Shown here in pieces: positions 3,936 to 64,000 of a DNA stretch of 64,000 nucleotides; the first letter of the stretch is position 1; every line of letters begins with the position of its first letter. A program made the position numbers and the translations under genes. Below the pieces are notes generated by a model. The model saw nothing but the letters and a program-made list of their open reading frames with translations. It was not told the origin of the DNA and ran no database searches. The stretch is from Octopus sinensis (taxonomy: Eukaryota): positions 59,458,001 through 59,522,000 of the forward strand of contig NC_043010.1 of NCBI RefSeq assembly GCF_006345805.1, written 5' to 3'.

Positions 3936-4815
3936 TAATAATAATAATGAAATTATTGTATACAGTGCTCAGGTGCACCACAACTTGTCAGAAAGTGCAT
4001 ATAAAGTACATGCAGTAGTGTAGAAATGTCTGGGTGTATGGAGGGGAGAAAATCAAGTGTAGTGTTGGCGAATCTCAGGAAGTATGGAAGTCTTGAAGGA
4101 AGCAGTGCTCCGACAACTAACAACTGATGTCGGCAGTTTGTTCCACGCTTCAGCAACTCTCAGCGTGAAAAAATGTTTCCTGAAGTCATGGAAGCTGTGC
4201 TGCTTTCTTACTTTGTAAATATGTCCACGGGTGTTAGACAGGTGGAGTTTGAAGAGGTGCTCAGAGTTATTGTTTGTGCGATGGTTGATAATTTTATGGG
4301 TGTCTGCCAAGTCAGCTGCCAGACGTCGGAGTTTCAATGTGTCCATGCCCAGGGAGGTAAGGCGTTCAGGATATGGCAAATGCCTGATGGAGGGTATTCT
4401 TTTGGTTGCACGTCACTGAACAGCTTCCAGACGATTGATGTCCTGGGCAAGATAGGGGCTCCAGACCAGCGATGCAAACTCCAGGTGAGGTCTTAGCATA
4501 GCTATATACAGCCGCAGATGGATAGCCGGAGAGCGGCTCACAAAGGATTTGGTGAGTGATGCCAAGACACCCTCAGCCTTCTTGACAATTTTAGCGATGT
4601 GTTTTGTCCAACGCAAATCGCTGTCGACAATAACACCCAGGTCACGTTCACTTGAAGACTTTTTGAGACTAGTGTTGTGGAGGGAGTAGGTGGACGCTGG
4701 GTTTCTCCTCCCAAAATGCATGGTGGTACATTTGTCCACAGCCAGCTTGAGTTGCCAGTCCATGATCCACTGCTGCATTGTGTCCAGGTCTGCTTGCAAT
4801 AGAGATCCATAGTGT
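3936..4815 (-). mobile_element. 5'-truncated CR1-clade LINE (RT C-terminal part and 3' end)
   Basis: Minus ORFs 4413-4829 (ERDLGVIVDSDLRW...RPHLEFAS.VWSPY) and 4053-4379 (LRRL..DL...HKII, TRGH..K, HFFT.RV..AWN.LP) are the typical CR1/L2 ORF2 C-terminus; (ATT)n-type tail. Confidence 0.9.
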
Positions 4816-9632: not shown

Positions 9633-11899
9633 ATGTTATTGTGCCTCTGTATTTTACTGACTTTCTTCCACTGTTATCTAAGTGAAGATATCACATACCA
9701 TGTTGAAGAAGAGAAGAGTCCCTATACCTCTGTAGGGGACATTGCTACTGACTTACAGAAATCAAACAGCTCCTTCTTAAAGGATAAGGATTTAACATTT
9801 AGTCAACTGCAACAAAAGGGAGAACAGTTGTTCAATGTGACAAGAACAGGTAAACTGTACACTGTTGAGACATTGGATGCTGAGTCTGTGTGTAGTTATG
9901 AGAAAGAATGTTTTGAAATCGTTAAAGTTGCAGTTCACAAATCCAAGACATTTATGAAGATCTTAAAGATTAAAGTCATCATAGAAGACATCAATGACCA
10001 TCAACCTGAGTTTCCTGAGAAAGAAATCACACTAATCTTTCGGGAAGGTGACAGAGATGGAACGAAGAAACCCATACATAATGCCATCGACAAGATAAAG
10101 GTTATCAAAACAGCTTAATAACATATGAATTGATGAAAGATAATGGAAAGTTTTCATTAAATGTTTCCAAACAAGATGATGGATTATCAACACTAAGAAT
10201 TATTTTAGAAGACAAATTAGACAGAGAAAAGAAGGACAGTTACAATATTGAAGTCATTGCTAAAGATGGAGGAACTCCACCAAAAAAATCTGTTTTAAAC
10301 GTTAAAATAACTGTGGAAGATGAAAATGATAATGCACCGCAATTTTCTCAAAGTATCTACAATGTTTCTATAGAACATAAACATAAAAAGAATATTCCAG
10401 TAGTCACATTATCTGCCAGTGATTTAGACATTGGCAGGAATGGTAAAATATCTTTCTATTTCAGTCAGAAAACTGATGAAAAAATAAAAGAATACTTTCA
10501 TTTAGATGAAAGTACTGGGAAGTTATTTCTTGAAAAACCTATAAATTTTGGTAAGAAAGAATCATTTAAATTATATGTGAAAGCCAAAGATAATGGAATT
10601 CCTCCTCTCAGTTCCATTGCAATAATTCAGATAAATATCATCAACCAACACAACAATCCTCCAAATATTGATGTGAACTTTATTTCTACACAGAATCACA
10701 ACACAGCTACCATTCTGGAAGACATCAAAGTTGGTAGTTTCATTGCTTATGTGATGGTCACTGACAATGATATTGGACACAATGGACAGGTGAACTGTCA
10801 TATCAAAGATGACACATTCAAACTACAGTCAATGGGATCGAAGGAATATAAAATAGTTCTAAAGAAAGCAGTAGACAGAGAGACACAGGAACATTATCAC
10901 TTTACTGTGTCGTGTGAAGATAAAGGATTACCTGCTCTGAAAACTGATAAAGATCTGTCAATCCAAGTGTTGGATGTGAATGATGTAGAGCCACACTTTA
11001 CAAAAGACACATTCAAGTTCCTTACCTATGAGAATGACAAAGCTAATTTCCCTATTGGCTTTATCAATGCTACAGACCCAGATATTGGTAAGGGAGGTGA
11101 ATTGTCTTATTCTCTGAGAAATAAACAGCAATATCGTCTGCCATTCCAGATTATCAACTCTGGCTTTATTTCAACAAACCAGTCTTTAGACAGAGAACAC
11201 AGAGATTTCTATGAGTTTGAGGTTTTTGTGAAAGACAATGGAAGCCCATCTCTGAATAACACAGTGAATGTTGAAGTGGAAGTATTGGATAGAAATGATA
11301 ATGCTCCATATTTTACATTTCCTAGTGTTGACCCTTTCACTCTTAATGTCCACTATCATCCGCAAAGTAAGAACGACATCACAGTTTTGAGAGCTTCAGA
11401 CAGAGACAATGGAAATAACGCTTTTCTCAAGTATGAAATCGTTTCAGGTAACGAGAGACAGTTATTTAAACTGGACTTGTTCACTGGTGTGTTATCTTAC
11501 TCTCGCACAGTTTACCAAAATGATGTCGGATCATATGTGCTTGAGTTTGTTGTGAAAGACAGTGGTACTCCAGTTCTGTCAGCAACAACTAGCCTATTGT
11601 TGAAACTAACTATTGACAAAAAAATATATCCAATGAGCCTTACATTAATAATTATAATTGCTGTAGCATGTGTAGTTGTATCTTTGGTTGTCATAGTTTC
11701 TCTTACAATATGCATCTTTAAACATATTGAAGTCAAGCAGAGCTCGAGTGCCAGACCAATGCCTTCTATAACAGAAATGAATGACTTCTATAACCGAACA
11801 GATTCCCTGTCTGTATCCCAAATTGACAATATCTATAGAGAATTAATACCAGAAAGGTACAAATATAAACGGTCAACATCTAGTAGTTTCTCAACAGTA
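9633..11899 (+). CDS. Pcdh: Protocadherin gene A, ectodomain exon (signal peptide, EC1-EC6, TM, proximal tail); -1 frameshift at ~10092 in this sequence
   Basis: ORFs 9633-10118 and 10130-11998 join if one A is restored in GACAA(A)GAT (compare NAIDKD in genes B and C). Cadherin motifs DINDHQP, LDRE, DENDNAP, DRNDNAP; EC1 C-X5-C; hydrophobic TM; upstream acceptor at 9575-9576; phase-0 donor GTAAGT at 11900. Confidence 0.9.
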
Positions 11900-12074
11900 G
11901 TAAGTATTCCAATATTTTACAGTTATCTGCACAGACAAGTTCTTTTAAAATTTGATGTTAAATTTCATTATTTAGACACACTGATAATAAAACTTTAAGT
12001 TCTCTCCGACATTCCATGATAGTATTTTATCTCATCATATAATTGATTCATTGAACTCTCACTTCCTTTTAACA

Positions 12075-18712: not shown

Positions 18713-19352
18713 TGTGTACAGTGCTCAGGTGCACTACAACTCATCTAAAGTGTATATATAATCAGGTGTAGTTTCGGCGGATTTCGGAAAGCATGAGGGC
18801 CTTAAAGGATGCAGTGTCATGGCAGTCAACAACTGACGCAGGCAGTTTATTCCATGCTTCAGCAACTCTGAGCGTGAAAAAATGTTTCCGAAAGTCATGG
18901 GAGCTGTGTTGTTTTCTAACTTTGTAGGCATGTCCACGTGTGTTAGACACATGGAGATCAAAAAGGTGTTCAATGTTGTTGTTGGTGAGGTGGTTGATAA
19001 CTTTGTGGGTGTTTACCAAGTCCGTCGCCAGACGCCGGAGCTTCAGTGAATCCATGCCCAGGGAAACAAGGCGCTCAGAATATGGTAGGTGTCTGATGGA
19101 GGGTATGCGTTTGGTTGCACGTCTCTGGACAGATTCCAGGAGGTCAATGTTCTGAGCAAGATAGGGGTTCCAAACTGATGATGCGAATTCCAAGTGTGGT
19201 CGTACCATAGCTGTATACAGTTTTAAATAGATGGCTGGAGAGCGGCTAACAAAAGTCTTGCTGAGTGATGCCAAGACACCCTCGGCCTTCTCGACAATTT
19301 TAGAGATATGCTTTGTCCAACGCAAATCACTGCTGACAGTGATGCCTAGGTC
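18667..19352 (-). mobile_element. 5'-truncated CR1-clade LINE with (ATT)n tail
   Basis: Minus ORF 18762-19325 (RWTKHI..RPHLEFASSVWNP..RRATK..HFFTLRVAEAWN); paralogous to 3936-4815. Confidence 0.9.
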
Positions 19353-20706
19353 ATGAAAAACACACTCAGACTAAGTGAAAGTGGTGACCTATAGAGTCAT
19401 CAATTGACATCTCATCACCATGACTGCTCTATTTCCATGAAAAAATCCCTGCTACATCTCAATCCATTTACTTATAAATATATCCCCCACAGATACATTT
19501 CACAACTTTAATCAATTGATAGAATTTTCCATTCTCTTGTAATTATGGTTCCATATTCCTCCCTAGACTTTTAGACACCAACACTAAACTTTGCAATGTG
19601 TCTGTCCTTCGATGATTTTCCAAATACAAAGTCTTCAGGGATCCCTTTTCTACTGTAGCGACTTAGAATTGAAACCCTCATTTTCTGCTGTCAGGTCAGT
19701 ACCATGTGCAGACCACACTCATGTCATGTGGTTTGTTTTGATTATCAACTAATTGGTTTGCAGCAATACCATGCCATATCATGAACATCATCTACAATGT
19801 CTTCGAAGTGCCCCCACAATTTTTAGTGTATTAAGACGAAAGCCCAACTAAGATCAACAGCAGAGGTTGAAAGAGCTACCGGAGAACACACATCCTCATC
19901 TCTCACCTAATTCAAGCCAATGAGAGAGAATGGCTTACTAACATAGCAGAAACAACATCGAGTTTTTCTTTGCCTAATTTCAGCCCAGAGTATAAAGGAC
20001 TTCTTAAATAATGACGAGCCAACTCTTTCCTATCTCTCGAGCCTTACCAATCATTGCTGTGGATAATAATTACACCGAAGTTTGATCCTAACCTCCAACA
20101 TCTCTACCTGCCAGCATTAGAAATCTATGTAAGTACAATGAACTTTACAATAAACAGATTTTATTATGTTTGCCTTTGTCATGCTTGGATAAAGACGGAC
20201 AAAATGTCGCATTTTGTCCAACCTGCTAACGATTCTGCCAACACGTTGCCGAAGCAATAGCAAATATTAACAATATTTCTAAGGTCTACCAGGTTTCAAA
20301 CTGAGAATTGAATCAGTTACCAGAGAAGTTGATTTTGACGTTCGTTACCTTTTGCCGATGAAAAAGGCTACAACAACACATTTCATTCGCCGATTAGGTT
20401 TCGTATAGAAACATTGTGAATTGGTCACTTGGTACACAGAGAATAAATAATTTACAAACCTTTACTGATGATAATATTTAGATGGTCTGACTTATGTCAT
20501 CATGTTCAATTCTTGGCACATGTGGCTGTTCATCCCATCCGTGACTTTGCCTGTTATAATTTAAGACAGTTCGGTCTGGGCACCGTGAAGTCTTGTAAGT
20601 CTTGAAGGAAAAGAGAAAGCAAATAAAAAAAGTAAATAAAAATACAGAAAGAAAGAAAGAGAAGAGAGAAAAGGAATAAAAAAGAAATAAATAGAATAAC
20701 AAAATA

Positions 20707-22090: not shown

Positions 22091-23023
22091 ACAACATTGT
22101 CTAAAACATAGTAATATCGTTCGACTCCTTTCTTGACAGACATGAGCCTTTCGGATAGTTGTATTAACCTCTAAATGTTGGAGAACAGTAGATTTGCTTA
22201 TTTTAAACTTTGTTTCGTAGCTTTTAAATGGCCCTATTAAACCCATTATTATACTGGAGGAAATTTGTATCTGGTTCTAAAAAATTCTGGAATTCTTCCA
22301 GGGTGCGGCAAGATCCATCTAAATTGATAAAGTCACGAATCTGGCTAACACTTCTCTCAAACCACGCAGGAAAAACCATTGCCTCTTCACTGACACTTAA
22401 GTGTTTAATAAAGTAAATTGGTTCTGTTATGAATTCATCAAATGAATTAGGCTCTGTGTTATTTGTAAACTTGTCAAAGGCAGAAATACAATCTTACCAA
22501 GAATCATTCCTGATAGAGTTAGCGAGTTTGCTCGGAGAAACGTTACCAAATACAGCTAAATTTTTCAGTTTTGTGGAGGAGGCATTGCATAATTGTTTCC
22601 ATTCGGATTCATAGTGAATGTCCAGCAACTTTCTCGTCCAGAATAGCTTTAAAGAGCTGACGTAAGCGAAAACTTCGATCATACCAAGTCCACCATCTTC
22701 AACAGGCTTACAAGCAACAACTCTCTTAAGCTTATCAGGTTTTCCACTCCAGAGAAATTGAAATAATATTTTGTTTAGTTTCTGTAGAAATTTACTCGGT
22801 GGATTTGGGAGAGTTAGGAAGAGAGTTCAATTTTGAGATGAGTAGTGGTTTTATAACAGCAATTCTACTCGGTGGTGTAATTATTCTTTTCATCCATCTA
22901 TTTATTATTACCTGATTTTCAAATAATTTATTTTCAAAATTTTTTTTGGCCACATCCTTTAAAACTATTGAGAATATTAAACCGAGAAGCTTGAAGTGCT
23001 TTGGGTTCCATTTTATATTTAAA

Positions 23024-23413
23024 CTAGCAGTATCGCCCGGCGTTGCTCGGGTTTTTAAAACAGAAATTACTATATAAGCATTTTTAGAGAGTTATAGCCA
23101 AAAAAATGCATTAAAAATGGGGAAAAAATGATGGTAATTTTTTTTTTAAATCGTTGACTCATCGTAGACATTTTTAGAGAGTTACTTCCCTTATATAATA
23201 GCGAAAAAATGCATTAAAATGGAAAAAAATTATGGTAAATTTTTTTTAAAATCGTAGACTCATCGTAGACGCGCGCTAATACCCAGAAGGGCTCGATAGG
23301 AATCACGACTATAAGATACCCGGTTTTGGTTAAACTGCACAGCAAAATGTGGGAGTAGTTAGGAATCTAAATCGTAGGAGACAGACACACAACCTTACTT
23401 TTATATATAAAGA
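23024..23413 (-). mobile_element. Non-autonomous Helitron
   Basis: On the minus strand it starts TC, ends with hairpin CCCGAGCAACGCCGGG plus CTAG, and is inserted at A|T; internal ~100-bp duplication; second copy at 43537-43935. Confidence 0.85.
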
Positions 23414-24103
23414 TTAGTTAAGTATCTGACTGAACTACCCCTTCTTGAACCTATCCATATCACCTGAGACTTATCATAGTTAATTTTAAGTCCGGATATA
23501 TCAGCGAAAAAATCAAGGTGTCAACTGTAGCTTCAAAAAACTCTCGCGAACCGTCTAAAATGAACTCTGTATCGTCTGTATATTGCGCCAACAGATACTC
23601 CCCATCACAAACTGTAATTCCTTTAATATCTCGATTTTTTCTTATAAGACCAGCCAGGACCCCAACGCAGAGAATAAAAAGATATGGAGAGAGAGAAGAC
23701 CACCCTGTCTACAGCGCAACTCAACAGGGAACCAAAGAGACAAAGTACCGTTAATTGTCAAGCAAGATCTATCACCACTGGACAGAATATTGAACCACTT
23801 ACGGATGTCATAACCAAAAGAAGAAAAAAATATAATGTCTTGTTTATAAATGGCCATGAGACAGAATCAAAGGCCTTCTGAAAATCTATTAAAAACAACA
23901 TTCCTGCTATGTCATTTGATTCTGTGTCGTTCATATCAGATCATCGAGCAATCTTACGTTGTCCCCCAACATCCATGATTTTTCATGTAACCTACGTTTT
24001 CAATAGAGATTATTATTTTGTGACCCATCACTGACATAATTTTAAGTTAGCGAATGAGTAGCAATGGTGAAAATTGTACTTAATTTTTTTTTCTCCATTT
24101 CTT

Positions 24104-26314: not shown

Positions 26315-26740
26315 AGCTAAAGATCAGTGAAAAAGAAAATACCTACGCTCAAATATTGAGAAATCTACAGCTACTCTATCCAGATTACAAGTTCAGGTTT
26401 ATACTTGTACTTATTGGACACTGAGATATGTATAACACACTGCCTAAATACTAATCTTGAGAAATTAGGCTTCTTAAGACCAGAAGGAAAAACCTGATTT
26501 GAAGACTACAGATCAAATCCCCCACTGGAACTGTAAAGTCTGTAAAACTTTCCAGAAGTTTATCACTAAAGTATATATGAGCATTTCTAGACATGCAACT
26601 ATATGCATGAAAATACATACATAAAACAAAACATACAAAGTTGTACATATACATGCATGTATACGAAAATACGCTGTTGATGTTGAAATTCCAATGAAGG
26701 AACTTTGGATGAAGGTTGGAAACCGATTCTTTCTCTATTC
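26315..26740 (+). mobile_element. 3' end of an RLE-type (R4/NeSL-like) non-LTR retroelement
   Basis: Homologous to 29680-30100. Confidence 0.7.
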
Positions 26741-29461: not shown

Positions 29462-30222
29462 GTATGTTCTGTGTACAAAGAAATAAGAACAAAGAAATAA
29501 GAACCCACAGTATGGTGGAAGCCATAACCACTCGTAATAAAAACAAGTACTGGTGGAATGTCCCAGTGAAAACCTCAATAAAATGTAAGCAAAACAAACC
29601 TGATATAATGATTTGGGATAGAGAAGAGAAACTGTGTACAGTTGTGGAAATTAGCTGCTCAGGGGATGTTAACATGAAACTGAAGATCAATGAAAAAGAG
29701 AACACCTATGCTGAACTATTGAGGAATCTGCAGTTACTCTGTCCAGATTACAAGTTCAGGTTTATACCTGTAATTATTGGGACACTGGGATATGTAACAC
29801 TGCCTAAATACCAATCTTGAGAAATTAGGCTTCTCAAAACTAGAAAGGAGAAAGCTGATTCAAAGACTATAGATTAAATCCATCATTGGAACTATAAAAA
29901 TCTGTGAAACCTTCCAGAAGTTTATCATATAAGTTTATATATGTGCATGTCTAGATATGCAAGTATATGCATGAGAATACATACATAAAACAAAACGTAC
30001 AAATCTGCATACATACATACATATCCTGTTGTTGATATTGAAATTCCAATGAAAGAGACTTGGGTCTAGGTTAGAAACCAGCTCTTTCTCTATTGAAAAG
30101 AAATCTTGAAATAAAACTGAATAATGACATCATACATACATACATACATACATACATACATACATACATACATACATACATACATACATACATACATACA
30201 TACATACGTACATACATACATA
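29462..30222 (+). mobile_element. 3' end of an RLE-type non-LTR retroelement followed by (CATA)n
   Basis: ORF 29464-29820 KPDIMIWD...VVEISC...K..Y..L is a PD-(D/E)xK restriction-like endonuclease motif; (CATA)n at ~30131-30222. Confidence 0.8.
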
Positions 30223-38905: not shown

Positions 38906-39093
38906 GAAATTTGGGGGAGGAGTAAGTTGATTACATCGATCCCATTACTCAACTGGTCCTTATTTTATGAATCCTGAAAGGATGAAAGGGTAAAGTTGAG
39001 CTCAGTGGAATTTGATATCAGAACATAAAGATGAATGAAATACTGCTAAGCATTTCACTCAGTATGATAAGAGTTCTGCTAGCTCACCACCTG

Positions 39094-39118
39094 GATAATA
39101 ATAATAATAATAATAATC

Positions 39119-39164
<46 letters not shown>

Positions 39165-39192
39165 TAATAATAATAATATAATAATAATAATG

Positions 39193-39223
<31 letters not shown>

Positions 39224-39225
39224 TA

Positions 39226-39264
<39 letters not shown>

Positions 39265-39282
39265 TAATAATAATAATAATAA

Positions 39283-39328
<46 letters not shown>

Positions 39329-39360
39329 TAATAATAATATAATAATAATAAATAATAATG

Positions 39361-39418
<58 letters not shown>

Positions 39419-39426
39419 TAATGATA

Positions 39427-39457
<31 letters not shown>

Positions 39458-39547
39458 TATAATAATAATAATATAATAATAATGATAATGATAATAACAA
39501 TAATAATAATAATAATGATAATAATAATGATAATAATAATAATAATG

Positions 39548-39587
<40 letters not shown>

Positions 39588-39616
39588 TAATAATAATGAT
39601 AATAATAATGATAATA

Positions 39617-39669
<53 letters not shown>

Positions 39670-39837
39670 ATAATAATAATAATGATAATAATAATGATAA
39701 TGATAATAATAATGATAATAATAATATAATAATAATAATAATAATATTAATAATAATGATAATGATAATAAATAATAATAATAATAATAATGATGATAAT
39801 AATAATGATAATAATAATGATAATGATAATAATAATG

Positions 39838-39886
<49 letters not shown>

Positions 39887-39986
39887 TAATAGTAATAATG
39901 ATAATGATAATAATAATGATAATAATAATAATAATGATAATAATAATAGTAATAATGATAATAATAATAATAAATAATAATAATAA
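39094..39986. repeat. ~890-bp (TAA)n microsatellite interspersed with TGA
   Basis: Direct inspection. Confidence 0.97.
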
Positions 39987-41500
39987 AATCATTTTGTGTT
40001 TGGTGCATTCCGCTGCATACACCAAATGGGAATCCTTACAGGTCCCTCCTGTGTAAATCATAATATTTCTGTCATAATTTTTGATGGAATTAGTCTGACT
40101 CATGTTATGGCACAACAAACAGGGCTTACCTCTCTTATGGGCGTTTTTTGGGGTGCAGCGTCCAGAAATTCCAATGGAGTTTTTGTTAGAGGTACTGGTC
40201 AATATTTCTATAATATTTCTATTACAGCTAAAGGCTACAATAGGCAGAAGAGGAAATATTTGTTGGAAATACTTTCTGAAAAATGGTGGTGCTGTCATGC
40301 AATGCTTTTGAAATGCTAGCAAAACTTCGGTGCCACTTAATCCCTAAAGTAATTCAGTCATAAGCTCTTATCTGACCGCTCAAACTAGACATGAAAGTTT
40401 GATTATCCTTACTAATTTCAGCTCTGTCATTTGCGATTCCCTTTAATCTTGGTTCTTTAGAACTGCACTTTACAAAACTATTTGCATGTTTCCAATAATC
40501 CCCAATGTCTGTGCAAATACATCTTATTCTCAAAAACTGGGACTTTGGATTTGATCTGATTGTATGATGTGGGTGATCAGAGCAGTGGTGGAAATGAATA
40601 TGAGATGACATGGGTTTGTAAAATAATTCTGTGACTATTCGGCCTTCCAAAAACTTGAATTTTGTGTCCATAATTACAACGCTAGTTTTTGAAAAGCTCA
40701 ACGGGAATTTTATTTCGGATTTAGTCTTCTGCGAAGCAGTCACAGAAATGTAAAAATTTGACTAAACTATCCTGTGTTCCTTTCCAGACAAAAAAGATGT
40801 CGTCAATGAACTGTAACCAGAGTATAGGTTCATGACCATGCAGGGATTTGACTGTCTCCATTCATTGCATTTCAAATTTTGTCATGAAGACTTTTGTGAA
40901 ATTAACTGCCATAGGGGTACCCATGGTGCATCCCTTGATCTGATGGAAAATGTTTCTCCAAACTTCATGGTGTTACTTTATAACACAAATTTTAATAAGT
41001 TACAGGGAAACTTTGAGGGAATACTTTTCCTTGACCACTTTCCAAAGACTTTCATACATGCTTCCACCCTGTCATCATGATCGATGTTAGGGTATAAGGA
41101 AGAACATCCCTAGTTGCCAAAAACAGTCTTTAACAATACTTTGGTGTTTAGAAAATTTGTTCAATTTGGAAACAAAATCAAAAGTATCCCGAATGTAAGA
41201 ACTTGATCTTTTAGCTACTGCAAGCAGGAAACCATCCAGCATTCCAAAATTTTAGCTGTGCAACATTCATACCCACTGCAAATTGGGTGCAATGGAGGAA
41301 ATTTTTCAAAAAATTTTTTTATTTTTGGAAGACCATAAATACAGTTGTTCTTCTTTCTGAACATAATAGCTTAGATTTTATGTCATTTATGAAATTGTTT
41401 TCCTCCATTTCAAAAATTATTTTATCAAGTTCTCTGTAATGGGGGTTTGGATCTACAGGTAGATTTTAATAAGAAGTTTAATCGTGACATTTACCAACAT
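39987..41500 (-). mobile_element. Degenerate Penelope-like element (RT and GIY-YIG region)
   Basis: Minus fragments PMGTPMAVNF (GTAMG-like RT motif), LFYKP..H..S.HP.H..RS.PKSQFLRIR.IC (PLE thumb) and C..S.LVY..EC (GIY-YIG start). Confidence 0.8.
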
Positions 41501-43100: not shown

Positions 43101-43536
43101 AATAATAATAATAAGAGCACTCAGAGAGTGTAAACCTCTGCCAAGGCAACACCAACGTCCTCTCAACGATTAACCAGAGATGATTTTTAAAATGAGAATA
43201 TCCGAAATAAACTCGGCTGCTCTCACAAATGAGAATATTAAAAATTAAGTAAAAAAAAAAATGGAGAAATAATCCCGAATCGTCGTCCAGTACCTGATCG
43301 ATCACAATGGTACTCATGGAATGTGAAGGTGGGTGTAGAAAATTTAGTCACAGTAATAAATAGTTTATTCTTATCTAATAAAAGCCAAATTTCTTAATCC
43401 ATCAGTTTCTACTAAGATAGAGATGTGAGTAAAATCAATAATAGAGAAACGAAAATACAACTTTGGAAACATCCTAAAGGAATATAATTGAGAAAGAATT
43501 GAAAGTGAGTGTGAGATCATAATCATGTTTAGTAAA

Positions 43537-43935
43537 CTAGCAGTATCGCCCGGCGTTGCTCAGGTTTGTAAGGGAAATAACTATATAAGCATTTTTAGAG
43601 ATGTAAAGTATAATAGCCATCTCAATATGGCTAACCACAAAGGGGGGGGGGGGGTTACTGTGGCTTTTTACATTCTGAGATTTAATAATACATTTTTAGA
43701 GAGTTACTTCCCTTATATATGCCAAAAATGCATTAAAAATGGGAAAAATTGATGGTAAATTTTCTTTTAAATCGTAGACTCATCATAGATGCGCGCTAAT
43801 ACCCAAAAGGGCTCGATATGAATCACGACTATAAGATACCCGGTTTTGGTTAAACTGCACCGCAAAATGTGGGAGTAGTTAGGAATCTAAATCGTAGGAG
43901 ACAGACACCACACAACCTCTCTTTATATATAAAGA
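43537..43935 (-). mobile_element. Non-autonomous Helitron (family of 23024-23413)
   Basis: Same termini (TC start; hairpin plus CTAG end on minus) and body. Confidence 0.85.
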
Positions 43936-44562
43936 TATAACAAATAATCCAGAATCCTTGTCTGGTACTGGATTGATCCCAAAATCTAATCAGTTTGTGC
44001 CAGTCGTGAGGCCAAACATCCCTGAGAGTTTCATCAGAATCCATCCAGTGGTTCTTGAGATATCTTGTCCACGGACAAACAAACAAACAAGCAACACTGA
44101 AAACAATACCCTTGCCTTCACTAAGGCAGAGTCAATGATAATTCTTTCTTCTATAGACACAAGGCCTGAAATTTTGGGGTAGGGAGCTGTTCAACTACAC
44201 CAACACCAATGCTCAACTGATTCTTATTTCATTCACCCTGAAAAGATAAAAAGGCAAAATTGACCACAGCAAAATTTGAACTCAAAACATGAGATGGAAA
44301 AGTTACTGTAAAATTTTTCCTGGTACCTGATGATTCTACCATATAATATACCTTATATACACTATATACATGCATACACACACACACATACAAATAGATA
44401 GGTATGTGTGTGTGTGTGTGTGTGTGTCCATATATGTATTTATATCTATATATGTGTTTGTGTATATGCATGTATGTGAAATCTATGCATGTGTGTGAAT
44501 ATGTATATGTATATTATATGTATGCATGTATACATATATATGAGTATGTATATGTAATATTA

Positions 44563-51111: not shown

Positions 51112-53472
51112 ATGACATTACTAATTCTGATGGTAATAATATCTTTCTTCCTCCCTGGGGCATGTATAGACATTACAGTTCGTTTAAAAGAAGAAAATAG
51201 TCCCAAAAGCTATGTGGGGGACATCACTGCTAATTCACAAAAGTGGCTCCAGGACAAAGAAGATCTCAGTCAGATTACATTTAATCAACTCCAACAAAAG
51301 GAGACAAAATTATTCAATGTCACCCAGTCAGGGAAACTGTACACGGTTCGGACAGTGGATGCTGAGTCACTATGTAGATATAATACAGAATGTTATAAAA
51401 CTGTGAAAGTTGCTGTTCACAAAGGAAAAAACTTCTTGAAAATCTTGAAAATTAAAGTAGTTATAGAAGACATCAATGACCACCAACCTAAGTTTCCAGA
51501 GAAGGAAATCACTTTGCACTTTGGAGAAGGAGATGGCAAAGGAATGAAAAAGTCCATTCCAAATGCCATTGATAAAGATGTTGGAGTTTTAAATAGTGTA
51601 ATTAATTATCATTTAAAGAACAATGAGGAAATGTTTTCATTATTAGTTTCTAAAAGAGCTGATGGAATATCTCGACTAGAGATTGTTCTAGAAAGTAAAT
51701 TAAATAGAGAAGTGAAAGATATGTACAGTGTACAAGTTGAGGCTGAAGATGGAGGTTCCCCTTCTAAAAAGAGTGTATTAGATGTGAAAATATTAGTAGA
51801 AGATGAGAATGATAACTTACCAGTATTCTCACAGAATATTTATAATGTTACTATAAAAAGTTATTTTCAAAATGATGTACCTGTTGTCACTTTGTCAGCT
51901 ACAGATTCCGATATTGGCAATAATGGGAAAATAAATTATTATTTTAGTCCCAAAACGTCAGAACTTGATAGCAAACATTTTAGACTCGTTAAGAAAAGTG
52001 GTGAGATATTTTTGATTGATAAAATTGATGCTATCATTGACAATGAAGTTTATACATTATACATTGAAGCCAGAGATGGGGGCAACCCTCCTCTGAGTTC
52101 CATAGCAACTGTTATGGTAAATGTCATCAACCAACACAACAATCCCCCAAATATTGATGTGAACTTTATTTCTACACAGAATCACAACACAGCTACCATT
52201 CTGGAAGACATCAAAGTTGGTAGTTTCATTGCTTATGTGATGGTCACTGACAATGATGTTGGACACAATGGACAGGTTAACTGTCATATCAAAGACGACA
52301 CATTCAAACTACAGTCAATGGGATCGAAGGAATATAAAATAGTTCTAAAGAAAGCAGTAGACAGAGAGACACAGGAACATTATCACTTTACTGTGTCGTG
52401 TGAAGATAAAGGATTACCTGCTCTGAAAACTGATAAAGATCTGTCAATCCAAGTGTTGGATGTGAATGATGTAGAGCCACACTTTACGAAAGACACATTC
52501 AAGTTCCTTACCTATGAGAATGACAAAGCTAATTTCCCTATTGGCTTTATCAATGCTACAGACCCAGATATTGGTAAGGGAGGTGAATTGTCTTATTCTC
52601 TGAGAAATAAACAGCAATATCGTCTGCCATTCCAGATTATCAACTCTGGCTTTATTTCAACAAACCAGTCTTTAGACAGAGAACACAGAGATTTCTATGA
52701 GTTTGAGGTTTTTGTGAAAGACAATGGAAGCCCATCTCTGAATAACACAGTGAATGTTGAAGTGGAAGTATTGGATAGAAATGATAATGCTCCATATTTT
52801 ACATTTCCTAGTGTTGACCCTTTCACTCTTAATGTCCACTATCATCCGCAAAGTAAGAACGACATCACAGTTCTGAAAGCATCTGATATAGACAGTCACA
52901 TGAATGCTTTTCTCAGGTATGAAATCGTTTCAGGTAACGAGAGACAGTTATTTAAACTGGACTCTTTCACTGGTGTGTTATCTTACTCTCGCACAGTTTA
53001 CCAAAATGATGCCGGATCATATGAGCTTGAGTTTGTTGTGAAAGACAGTGGTACTCCAGTTCTGTCAGCAACAACTAGTGTGTCTTTGACACTGACTGTT
53101 AGTAACAAGACGTCACCAATGTTCACAGCTGTGCACCTACCAAGTGATAACACAATAGATGCGACATTGTTGATTATCATTGTAGTAGCAGCTGTGATAG
53201 TATCTATAGCTATTGTGGTTTCTATAACCCTGTGTATTGTGAGATGTAACAATGTGAGAAATAGCTCATCTGAAAGAACAGCAGAAGAGAAACAGGCATA
53301 CCAATGTCGCAATGAGATGAGACAGTTGATCTATCAAGGTAACAACAGTGTACCTGTGATGTCAGGTAATCGAGGAGAAATGTCTGACAGATATGGTCAT
53401 TTGAGGAGCCATTACTATCCTGAAGACTGGAAGACATCGACAATGAGCAGAACACTTCAAAAGTCCACAAAG
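51112..53472 (+). CDS. Pcdh: Protocadherin gene B, ectodomain exon (signal peptide, EC1-EC6, stalk, TM, proximal tail), intact
   Basis: 805-aa ORF with signal peptide MTLLILMVIISFFLPGACI, six cadherin repeats and TM LLIIIVVAAVIVSIAIVVSITLCIV; phase-0 donor AAG|GTAAGC at 53473. Confidence 0.95.
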
Positions 53473-53551
53473 GTAAGCACTATTTCAATGAATAAACTAT
53501 TAAATTATGTTCAACTGAGAATGTTTTAGCTGAATGTTTTATATTTTACAG

Positions 53552-55363: not shown

Positions 55364-55517
55364 CAGAAATACAGCCAACCAATAGAGGTGACATCTTATG
55401 GAGACAACAGACCATCCTCTAACTATCCCACTGACACATTGACCAGTCGTAAGAGCAGTGGACAGTGCTGGAGTGAGCGGTCAAGCAGACAGTATGAAGA
55501 AATACCAGCAATGTCAG
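55364..55517 (+). CDS. Pcdh: Predicted cytoplasmic exon of gene B (QKYSQP...SGQCWSE..QYEEIPAMS)
   Basis: Tandem acceptor TAGCAG (55361-55366), open phase-0 frame, phase-1 donor CAG|GTAAAA at 55518; YEEIP parallels the gene A exon. Confidence 0.8.
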
Positions 55518-57779: not shown

Positions 57780-57901
57780 GAATCTATGGTGGTGCCCCAC
57801 CGGATGTATCAAGCACCAGTGAGAGAGACCATTACCAAGACAGATATGTGAAACCTCCAGAGAGACAGTTACCTTCAACACCAGATGTTGTTGTCAGTTA
57901 A
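57780..57901 (+). CDS. Pcdh: Predicted terminal exon of gene B (GIYGGAPP...KPPERQLPSTPDVVVS*)
   Basis: Acceptor GTGTTTCAG; phase-1 entry gives an open frame to TAA at 57899-57901; Pro-rich C-terminus. Confidence 0.75.
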
Positions 57902-63314: not shown

Positions 63315-64000
63315 ATGTTATTCCTATATGTTTTACTGTCTCTCTTTGACTGTTATTTAAGTGAAGATATCACATATCATGTTGAAGAAGAGAATAGCCC
63401 CTACCTATAGGGACATTGCTACTGACTTAAGAAATCAGACAGCTCCTTCTTAAAGAATAAGGATTTGATTACATTTAGTCAACTGCAACAAAAGGGAGAA
63501 CAGTTTTTTCAATGTGACTAAAACAGGTAAACTGTACACTGTTGAGACAATTGGATGCTGAGTCGTGTGTGGTTATGAGAAAATGTTTTGAAATCGTTAA
63601 AGTTGCTGTTTTCACATCCAAGACATTATGAAGATCTTAAAGATTAAAGTCATAATAGAAGACATCAATGACCACCAACCTGAGTTCCCCGAGAAAGAAA
63701 TCACCCTGCAATTTGAAGAAGAATATGGGAAAGGAAAACAAAATCCTGTACCTAACGCTATTGACAAAGATATAGGTTATCAAAACAGTTTAATTAGATA
63801 TGAGTTACATGGTCATACAAATCTTTTTTCATTATTTGTCTCTAAACAAGCTGATGGATTATCAACCTTAACAATTATTTTAGAAGAGAAATTAGACAGA
63901 GAAAAGAAGGACAATTACAATATTGAGGTCATCGCCAAAGATGGGGGAACTCCACCAAAACAATCTGTTTTAAATGTTAAAATATCTGTAAAAGATGAAA
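63315..64000 (+). pseudogene. Pcdh: Protocadherin gene C, 5' part (signal peptide, EC1, EC2), frameshifted in this sequence; pseudogene or assembly error
   Basis: High nucleotide similarity to gene A 9633-10325; about 8 small indels in 63400-63630, then an uninterrupted frame 63628-64000 (DINDHQPEFP..NAIDKD..LDRE..KDGG); acceptor at 63265-63266. Confidence 0.8.

Follow-up and report, generated by a model that had tools for sequence, protein, structure and literature searches.

What keeps two protocadherin genes nearly identical over three consecutive domains when they are strongly diverged on both sides? This question is raised by genes A and B, which lie on a 64,000-nucleotide stretch of Octopus sinensis chromosome CM016872.1 (assembly GCA_006345805.1, approximately positions 59,458,001-59,522,000), hereafter called the window. 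The initial annotation of the window described a 955-bp tract covering extracellular cadherin (EC) domains 4 to 6 of both genes, and proposed that ectopic gene conversion keeps a membrane-proximal module near-constant while the distal module diversifies, without shared exons. Here, we report that the tract is part of a pattern that extends over a tandem array of at least 17 copies. Partial-gene concerted evolution across this array, most simply by interlocus gene conversion, is very likely the explanation.

The similarity of genes A and B was measured by direct alignment. Positions 10638-11592 of gene A and 52124-53078 of gene B aligned without gaps at an offset of 41486, with exactly 23 mismatches in 955 bp (97.6% identity). 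The mismatches were unevenly placed: 13 of the 23 crowded into 11387-11419, and the longest identical run (11003-11386) was 384 bp, compared with 75 bp for the longest run in 10000 shuffles of the mismatch positions. At the same offset, 50-bp windows retained only 25-30 identical positions by 10500-10550 on the upstream side and 23-27 by 11600-11650 on the downstream side; the background level was reached within approximately 100 bp of either end. Maximum chi-square analysis placed the 5' breakpoint at A 10632/B 52118 and the 3' breakpoint at A 11593/B 53079. Outside the tract, the two genes were 66% identical in EC1-3 and approximately 49% identical, which is unalignable, in the stalk, transmembrane segment (TM) and tail. 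The ungapped match with its long identical run, the abrupt loss of identity both at the EC3/EC4 boundary (approximately 10632-10655) and where EC6 ends (11593), and the divergence of the remaining parts had all been claimed, and all were reproduced.

We next asked whether the tract is particular to this pair. Seventeen exon-1 copies (A-Q) were extracted from loci around annotated O. sinensis paralogs; one of these loci, L001, overlaps the window from position 41112 on with 0 mismatches. Fourteen copies (A-N) formed the aligned set, and O, P and Q were compared in addition. All 17 copies lie in tandem on the + strand and span 59.467-59.836 Mb of CM016872.1, which gives the array a length of at least 369 kb. 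In EC4-6, the identity was 98.5-99.6% among B-N, and gene A was 96.2-97.1% identical to each of the 13 copies compared with it. Thus, the shared module described for A and B is not particular to this pair. The EC1-3 identities were of a different order: 66-68% between B and the rest, and 81-94% among A and C-N, of which gene A is an ordinary member (83-89%). The stalk, TM and tail were 95-99% identical among B-N and unalignable for A. Given that B has an old EC1-3 lineage and A has an unrelated stalk, TM and tail, EC4-EC6 is the only overlap of the pair. The A-B tract is therefore the locally visible overlap of B's old EC1-3 and A's foreign tail.

The position of the switch was common to the array. 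All 14 aligned copies changed to near-identity at the EC3-EC4 linker (…INQHNNPPNIDV…), and, whichever pair was tested, the 5' breakpoint lay within the same stretch of approximately 25 bp (A 10632-10655). Copies O, P and Q, located approximately 310-330 kb downstream of gene B, carry a third class of EC1-3 (53-80% identical to B and F), so that the EC1-3 of the sampled copies splits into at least 3 deep classes. These three copies switched inside the same 100-column window as the others, and from EC4 onward they mostly matched B and F at 97-100% identity. In all copies but A, the constant block runs on through the stalk, the TM and most of the cytoplasmic part encoded by exon 1. The last ~25 codons of exon 1 (alignment columns 781-808, approximately B 53400-53472) regained a proportion of synonymous differences (pS) of 0.3-0.4, indicating that the block has a 3' edge inside the cytoplasmic part too. 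Exons 2-3 were only ~90-98% identical between units. A second homogenised block was present in the EC1 core (alignment codon columns 61-120).

Synonymous divergence (dS, Nei-Gojobori) followed the same boundary. Between A and B, dS was 1.32 in EC1-3, dropped to 0.052 in EC4-6 and exceeded 2 in the tail; the means for the nine intact copies F-N were 0.41, 0.030 and 0.069, respectively. EC4-6 forms a trough of 0.030-0.052 against 0.41-1.32 in EC1-3. A fine profile of copies F-N in 20-codon windows placed pS at ~0-0.1 over alignment codon columns 345-780, with peaks at columns 121-200 and 281-340, which correspond to islands in EC2 and late EC3. The old divergence is kept in these two islands and at the end of the signal peptide. 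The dN/dS ratio was ~0.25 in EC1-3, and the window ratio of nonsynonymous to synonymous proportions (pN/pS) was at most 0.61 (codons 301-320). As for the proposal that the distal module diversifies, the retained divergence was found; positive selection in EC1-3 was unsupported at the window level, with pN/pS below 1 throughout. The GC content at third codon positions was 0.35-0.38 in the homogenised blocks versus 0.25 in codons 121-340, the direction expected of GC-biased conversion, in a comparison uncontrolled for codon and amino-acid usage.

The sequences around exon 1 behaved differently from the block. Most pairs had no alignable sequence in the 2 kb that precede the ATG, and in the 3 kb that follow exon 1 the alignment was limited to exon 2 with 20-40 bp of flank. 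Unaligned flanks were recorded for B-F, B-C, E-F, F-H, G-J, H-I, M-N, F-N and F-P, and for A versus the others. Since flanks and introns are unalignable for most pairs, the constant block, and not EC1-3, is the outlier on a diverged background. We also considered cDNA-templated conversion, given that the similarity is confined to exons. It is disfavoured by the extension of the similarity 13-24 bp into the intron flanks.

To compare species, we used the proteins of O. vulgaris (GCA_951406725.2) and Argonauta hians (GCA_054771915.1), together with the DNA of A. hians locus L005, from which two copies were compared with B and F; the groupings are those of identity comparisons, not of bootstrapped trees. 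The EC4-6 proteins were 99.7% identical within O. sinensis, 97.8% within A. hians and 94.7% between the two, and EC1-3 proteins did not group by species. In EC1-3, gene B reached 76% identity to A. hians P0002, compared with no more than 61% to any O. sinensis paralog; in EC4-6, its identity was 99.8% to its own paralogs but 94% to P0002. The same behavior was seen for P0030 with P0026/P0021 and for O. vulgaris P0028 with P0033. EC1-3 of the B, F and P0030 types was in each case nearer to the A. hians relatives than to the O. sinensis paralogs. EC4-6 contained 4 fixed and 8 nearly fixed species differences common to all paralogs (e.g. YEIVSG versus YEIMSG), and EC1-3 contained 0. Differences that are species-specific and yet common to all paralogs require exchange between copies, and constraint alone does not provide it. 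At the DNA level, the two A. hians neighbors were 48-73% identical in EC1-3 and 94-100% from EC4 to the end of exon 1; gene B and its A. hians EC1-3 counterpart were 62-84% identical in EC1-3 and 85-98%, mostly 91-98%, from EC4 to the exon end. The boundary between the variable and constant parts occupies the same residue range in O. sinensis and A. hians. Overall, EC4-6 groups by species and EC1-3 by orthology. In classical concerted evolution, the similarity among the paralogs of one species exceeds that between orthologs of different species; here only part of each gene behaves in this manner, and the remainder keeps its orthology signal.

The dS trough, the common breakpoint at EC3/EC4, the unalignable flanks and the disagreement between domains across species together support the proposal that a membrane-proximal module is maintained by ectopic conversion. 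We infer that conversion, rather than another exchange mechanism, is the agent. The alternative that comes nearest takes recent tandem duplication as the background and EC1-3 as the anomaly, either diverged very fast through diversifying selection or targeted mutation, or swapped as a cassette, with no need of homogenising conversion from EC4 to the tail. The flanks of C-D, D-E and P-Q, which are 94-99% identical next to EC1-3 parts of 75-85%, fit it, as do the switches of nearest neighbor that reveal exchange inside EC1-3. It is at odds with the unalignable introns and upstream regions of most pairs despite 98-100% identity from EC4 to the tail, with an EC1-3 divergence that is equally high at synonymous sites (dS 0.4-1.3, dN/dS ~0.25), and with the B-, F- and P0030-type EC1-3 that is nearer to A. 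hians while EC4-6 is species-specific. We consider it unlikely. C-D, D-E and P-Q do look like recent unit duplicates, and these near-identical flanks, together with a nearest neighbor that changes along EC1-3 in a mosaic manner, indicate that unit duplication and EC1-3 exchange also occur. Recent unit duplication, or conversion tracts on either side of EC1-3, thus contribute to the pattern.

For gene A, a single chimeric origin could be proposed, in which a fragment that starts ~70 bp before the ATG and reaches the EC6 end was copied from an array member and came to lie next to a foreign stalk, TM and tail, with no continuing exchange. What A has in common with other units does run only from 9561/9622 to 11592/11635, and in EC1-3 it is a typical representative of the A, C-N class (83-89%). 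O. vulgaris P0035 also has its tail and 3' breakpoint in common with A, which suggests that the junction may predate the species split. Such an origin would account for the 3' limit of A and not for the tract: 10638-11386 is ~99.7% identical to the array consensus versus 83-89% in EC1-3, the island 11387-11430 is left unexplained, and later conversion would still be needed, which makes a one-off event decidedly improbable. Collapse, chimeric joining or short-read polishing of the assembly could also make paralogs look alike, and both the many 1-bp indels, typical of an imperfectly polished long-read consensus, and the fused or cross-spliced NCBI models at this locus agree with a flawed record. 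The copies nevertheless keep private substitutions (48 variable columns among B-N, of which 37 are singletons, and the 23 A-B differences), and the same pattern and boundary are present in three separate assemblies, those of O. sinensis, O. vulgaris (P0027, P0028 and P0035) and A. hians, which renders an artefact very unlikely. Regulatory sites occur in the variable exons of vertebrate clustered protocadherins, and the octopus block is confined to exons; purifying selection on the nucleotides themselves, through an exonic regulatory element or an RNA structure, might then keep EC4 to the tail identical. This would demand that ~1.3 kb be held at 97-100% identity down to nearly all synonymous sites, far beyond the needs of known elements. 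It also conflicts with the species-specific differences common to all paralogs and with a block that is 91-98% identical between species versus 98-100% within, and it is hardly credible.

Several observations weigh against repeated conversion as the whole account. No conversion event was observed directly, and the mosaic neighbors and the island 11387-11430 are indirect evidence. The flanks of C-D, D-E and P-Q are 94-99% identical, yet EC1-3 contains stretches of only 75-85%. Selection for diversity is not demonstrated, with a window pN/pS in EC1-3 that stays below 1 (maximum 0.61). Finally, 1-bp indels are frequent in this part of the O. sinensis assembly, many of them in short base runs, and single-base details are not fully reliable. 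Single-base features, including the frameshift of gene A, therefore need read-level confirmation.

With these reservations, the data show partial-gene concerted evolution with one common 5' boundary, which could proceed as follows. Repeated interlocus (non-allelic) gene conversion would keep the block from the EC3-EC4 linker to the cytoplasmic part near-identical in all copies, and occasional whole-unit duplication or unequal exchange would add to it. Conversion tracts may start inside the already similar block and stop where the similarity ends. The 5' boundary might be held by selection for EC1-3 diversity, by a barrier to heteroduplex extension at 15-35% divergence, or by both.

The tract of gene A was resolved on a finer scale. 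From 10638 to 11386, gene A has only 2 private differences (10772 and 11002) and 3 polymorphisms found in other copies too. In the EC6 patch that follows (Table 1), the RASDRDNGNNAFLK peptide recurs in O. sinensis P0036 and O. vulgaris P0035, and we interpret this patch as an unconverted or alternative-haplotype segment. From 11593, the identity of gene A collapses versus every other copy.

The claim of a common module without shared exons was examined in the downstream exons. Each of the units B, C, D, E and F carries an exon 2 and an exon 3 of its own, and the three exons of gene B join into a complete 878-aa protein. The array is tandem with a single orientation, and a shared constant exon set of the vertebrate type was not found among these units.

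This arrangement can be compared with the vertebrate clustered protocadherins (Pcdhs), in which dS is highest in EC2/EC3 and lowest in EC5/EC6, a profile attributed to conversion that spares EC2-3, where specificity is determined (PMC4978886, reporting and re-measuring Noonan et al. 2004). Both systems have tandem variable units and a low membrane-proximal dS, and the octopus peaks lie in EC2 and late EC3. Unlike the vertebrate case, the octopus block also covers EC4, the TM and the proximal tail, stays at 97-100% identity over at least 17 genes with one sharp common 5' boundary, and belongs to an independent cephalopod expansion whose units lack shared constant exons. The array is thus a convergent example of a process known in the vertebrate clusters. 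The outcome resembles that of the Pcdh alpha and gamma constant exons, a common proximal and intracellular part combined with a variable recognition part. In vertebrates this sameness is achieved by splicing to three shared exons, whereas in octopus it would be achieved by recombination between genes with their own exons 2-3. Cephalopods do not use shared final exons (Albertin et al. 2022). As far as the accessible parts of the earlier reports go, cephalopod arrays are tandem, same-orientation and multi-exon, lie on one chromosome and may include pseudogene fragments, and 'recent duplication or gene conversion' and 'homogenization through gene conversion' were already suggested for them (Albertin et al. 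2015/2022, Styfhals et al. 2019; PMC6339937). In those accounts, conversion is a general explanation of similarity; here it is resolved by domain, with a breakpoint and a dS profile. We found no domain-resolved analysis, breakpoint or dS profile for cephalopod arrays in a literature that was covered in part, which is not proof of absence.

Cephalopods and vertebrates expanded their protocadherins independently, and cephalopods are said to lack the joining of variable to constant exons. The octopus array reaches a constant proximal and intracellular half and a variable distal half by way of recombination between full genes. The functional analogy is based on the cis-dimerisation of vertebrate Pcdhs through EC5-EC6 and on signaling through their constant exons. 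By this analogy, we infer that the constant block may act as a common module for cis-interaction and signaling and EC1-3 as the variable half for trans-recognition. A constant EC4-EC6, TM and tail would then let any isoform pair in cis and signal alike, with EC1-3 setting the trans specificity; this is a testable hypothesis for the assembly of octopus protocadherins into mixed cis-complexes that share one output. More tentatively, and with rather less confidence than we place in the exchange itself, the EC3/EC4 boundary could be actively maintained and the EC2 and late-EC3 islands kept diverse by selection, while homogenisation would sweep the other coding parts and, in young units, the non-coding flanks too. 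This would be a genome-encoded variable-plus-constant receptor that arose in octopods independently of vertebrates and needs no constant exons. If so, function rather than a passive divergence barrier would be the reason why O. sinensis, O. vulgaris and A. hians have the boundary in common. The exact boundary can be used in the design of domain swaps. In practice, a near-identical block of ~1.3 kb confounds whole-gene trees, the quantification of short-read RNA-seq and gene models.

The features of the window are collected in Table 1.

Table 1. Protocadherin features of the window (positions are those of the window; a slash marks an exon-intron junction).
Feature	Position	Strand	Description
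Gene A	9633-11998	+	Signal peptide, EC1-EC6, own stalk, TM and short tail, stop codon 11996-11998; from Pfam and three-frame translation
Gene A, frameshift	10092-10094	+	1-bp deletion, A3 to A2; only break in the frame
Gene A, tract part 1	10638-11386	+	EC4, EC5 and start of EC6; fully homogenised with the array
Gene A, EC6 patch	11387-11430	+	14 A-private differences in 44 bp; encodes RASDRDNGNNAFLK, not KASDIDSHMNAFLR
Gene A, tract part 3	11431-11592	+	Rest of EC6; 3 A-private differences
Gene B, exon 1	51112-53472	+	787 codons: signal peptide, EC1-6, TM, proximal tail; donor AAG/GTAAGC
Gene B, constant block	52118-53400	+	EC4 to most of the exon-1 cytoplasmic part; 3' limit approximate
Gene B, tract partner	52124-53078	+	EC4-EC6
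Gene B, exon 2	55364-55517	+	Own copy; acceptor TTTTATAG/, donor CAG/GTAAAA
Gene B, exon 3	57780-57901	+	Own copy; includes the stop codon
Gene C, start of exon 1	63315-64000	+	Runs off the window; full copy at L001 22204-24543

Genes A and B both encode six-EC protocadherins, as evidenced by their translations and by Pfam matches (five stretches of Cadherin plus Cadherin_2). They have a signal peptide, six EC domains, one TM and a cytoplasmic tail; in gene B, the ectodomain and TM lie in one large exon (51112-53472). The full ectodomain aligned, each domain with its counterpart, to EC1-6 of Pcdh gamma-B4 (6E6B; query 63-660) and to delta2 protocadherins (6VG1, 6VG4).

The frameshift site of gene A reads GACAAGAT in place of GACAAAGAT; B, C and the consensus of the intact copies read GA(C/T)AAAGAT. 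Gene A may be a pseudogene or may carry an assembly indel, and genuine pseudogenisation is no more likely, and no less, than an error in the long-read consensus. The tail of gene A was 100% identical over 134-140 aa to that of O. vulgaris P0035, an intact protein of 789 aa that carries the island of gene A and has the same 3' limit. Over the other parts, P0035 was 98.4% identical to gene A in EC4-6 and just 81.5% in EC1-3. The latter value is too low for the ortholog of a sister species, and points either to several A-type genes or to an EC1-3 exchange that postdates the split. No exon 2 or 3 was found downstream of gene A within the window. A protein search with the gene A tail returned no match, not even P0035, and a search with its EC1-3 returned short proteins only. 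In the model of O. bimaculoides P0034 (1102 aa), EC1-3 occurs twice in succession, at residues 11-346 (79% identity to the EC1-3 of gene A) and 529-864 (75%), and the model is probably a fusion of neighboring units.

The open reading frame of gene B is 51112-53529, and its first 787 aa are 100% identical to O. sinensis P0001, 'protocadherin beta-15-like isoform X1'. In 100-column windows, its constant block was 95-100% identical to copies C-Q. Its exon 2 matched those of other units at ~90-98% identity, and only ~20-40 bp of flank could be aligned. The NCBI model of P0001 (L001 10001-39688, window 51112 on; 29.7 kb) joins exon 1 of B to exons 2-3 of E, located 27 kb downstream, and skips B's exons 2-3 as well as copies C and D. 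The 878-aa product of B's own exons differs from P0001 at one residue (N807, not H) because the NCBI model uses exon 2 of gene E. We rejected this model as evidence for shared exons, given that exons 2-3 are present in every unit and that B's set is intact. Other NCBI models in the array are fused giants of 1786, 2561, 3535 and 4439 aa. Either real read-through splicing across units or an annotation confounded by the near-identical block could produce P0001 and the fused models.

The part of gene C in the window, which covers EC1-2, matched gene A at 84% identity and gene B at 71%, and contained many 1-2-bp indels. Copies C, D (L001 29050-31401) and E (L001 35894-38247) contain 19, 2 and 1 frameshifting indels, respectively. 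These breaks are nearly all of 1 bp, many of them in short base runs, and the same T5 run reads T6 in D and T4 in E. The breaks in C, D and E look more like long-read consensus error than like decay. Conversion into dead genes, which the frameshifts of A, C, D and E might suggest, was not built on, since 1-bp changes make assembly error at least as likely.

In A. hians, ~655 bp (L005 10555-11209) interrupt exon 1 of the B counterpart at the position that matches B nucleotide 557. The annotation of P0002 reads across this interruption, which may be an intron or an inserted element. The closest non-Octopus protein hits were those of A. hians (84%), ahead of O. bimaculoides (67%, a fused model). 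The 91-98% identity of the constant-block DNA of A. hians and O. sinensis seems close for two distant octopod families.

The 39 kb between genes A and B (window 12000-51000) contain no protocadherin exon. A 309-aa open reading frame at 39079-40008 was dismissed as spurious: it has no Pfam hit and consists of an (ATA)n microsatellite of ~298 units at 39095-39986. The gap also contains dispersed repeats that recur elsewhere in the window and array (e.g. 4051-4644 with 18760-19353, 26317-26739 with 29680-30094, and 23020-23414 with 43533-43936), and these are probably transposable elements.

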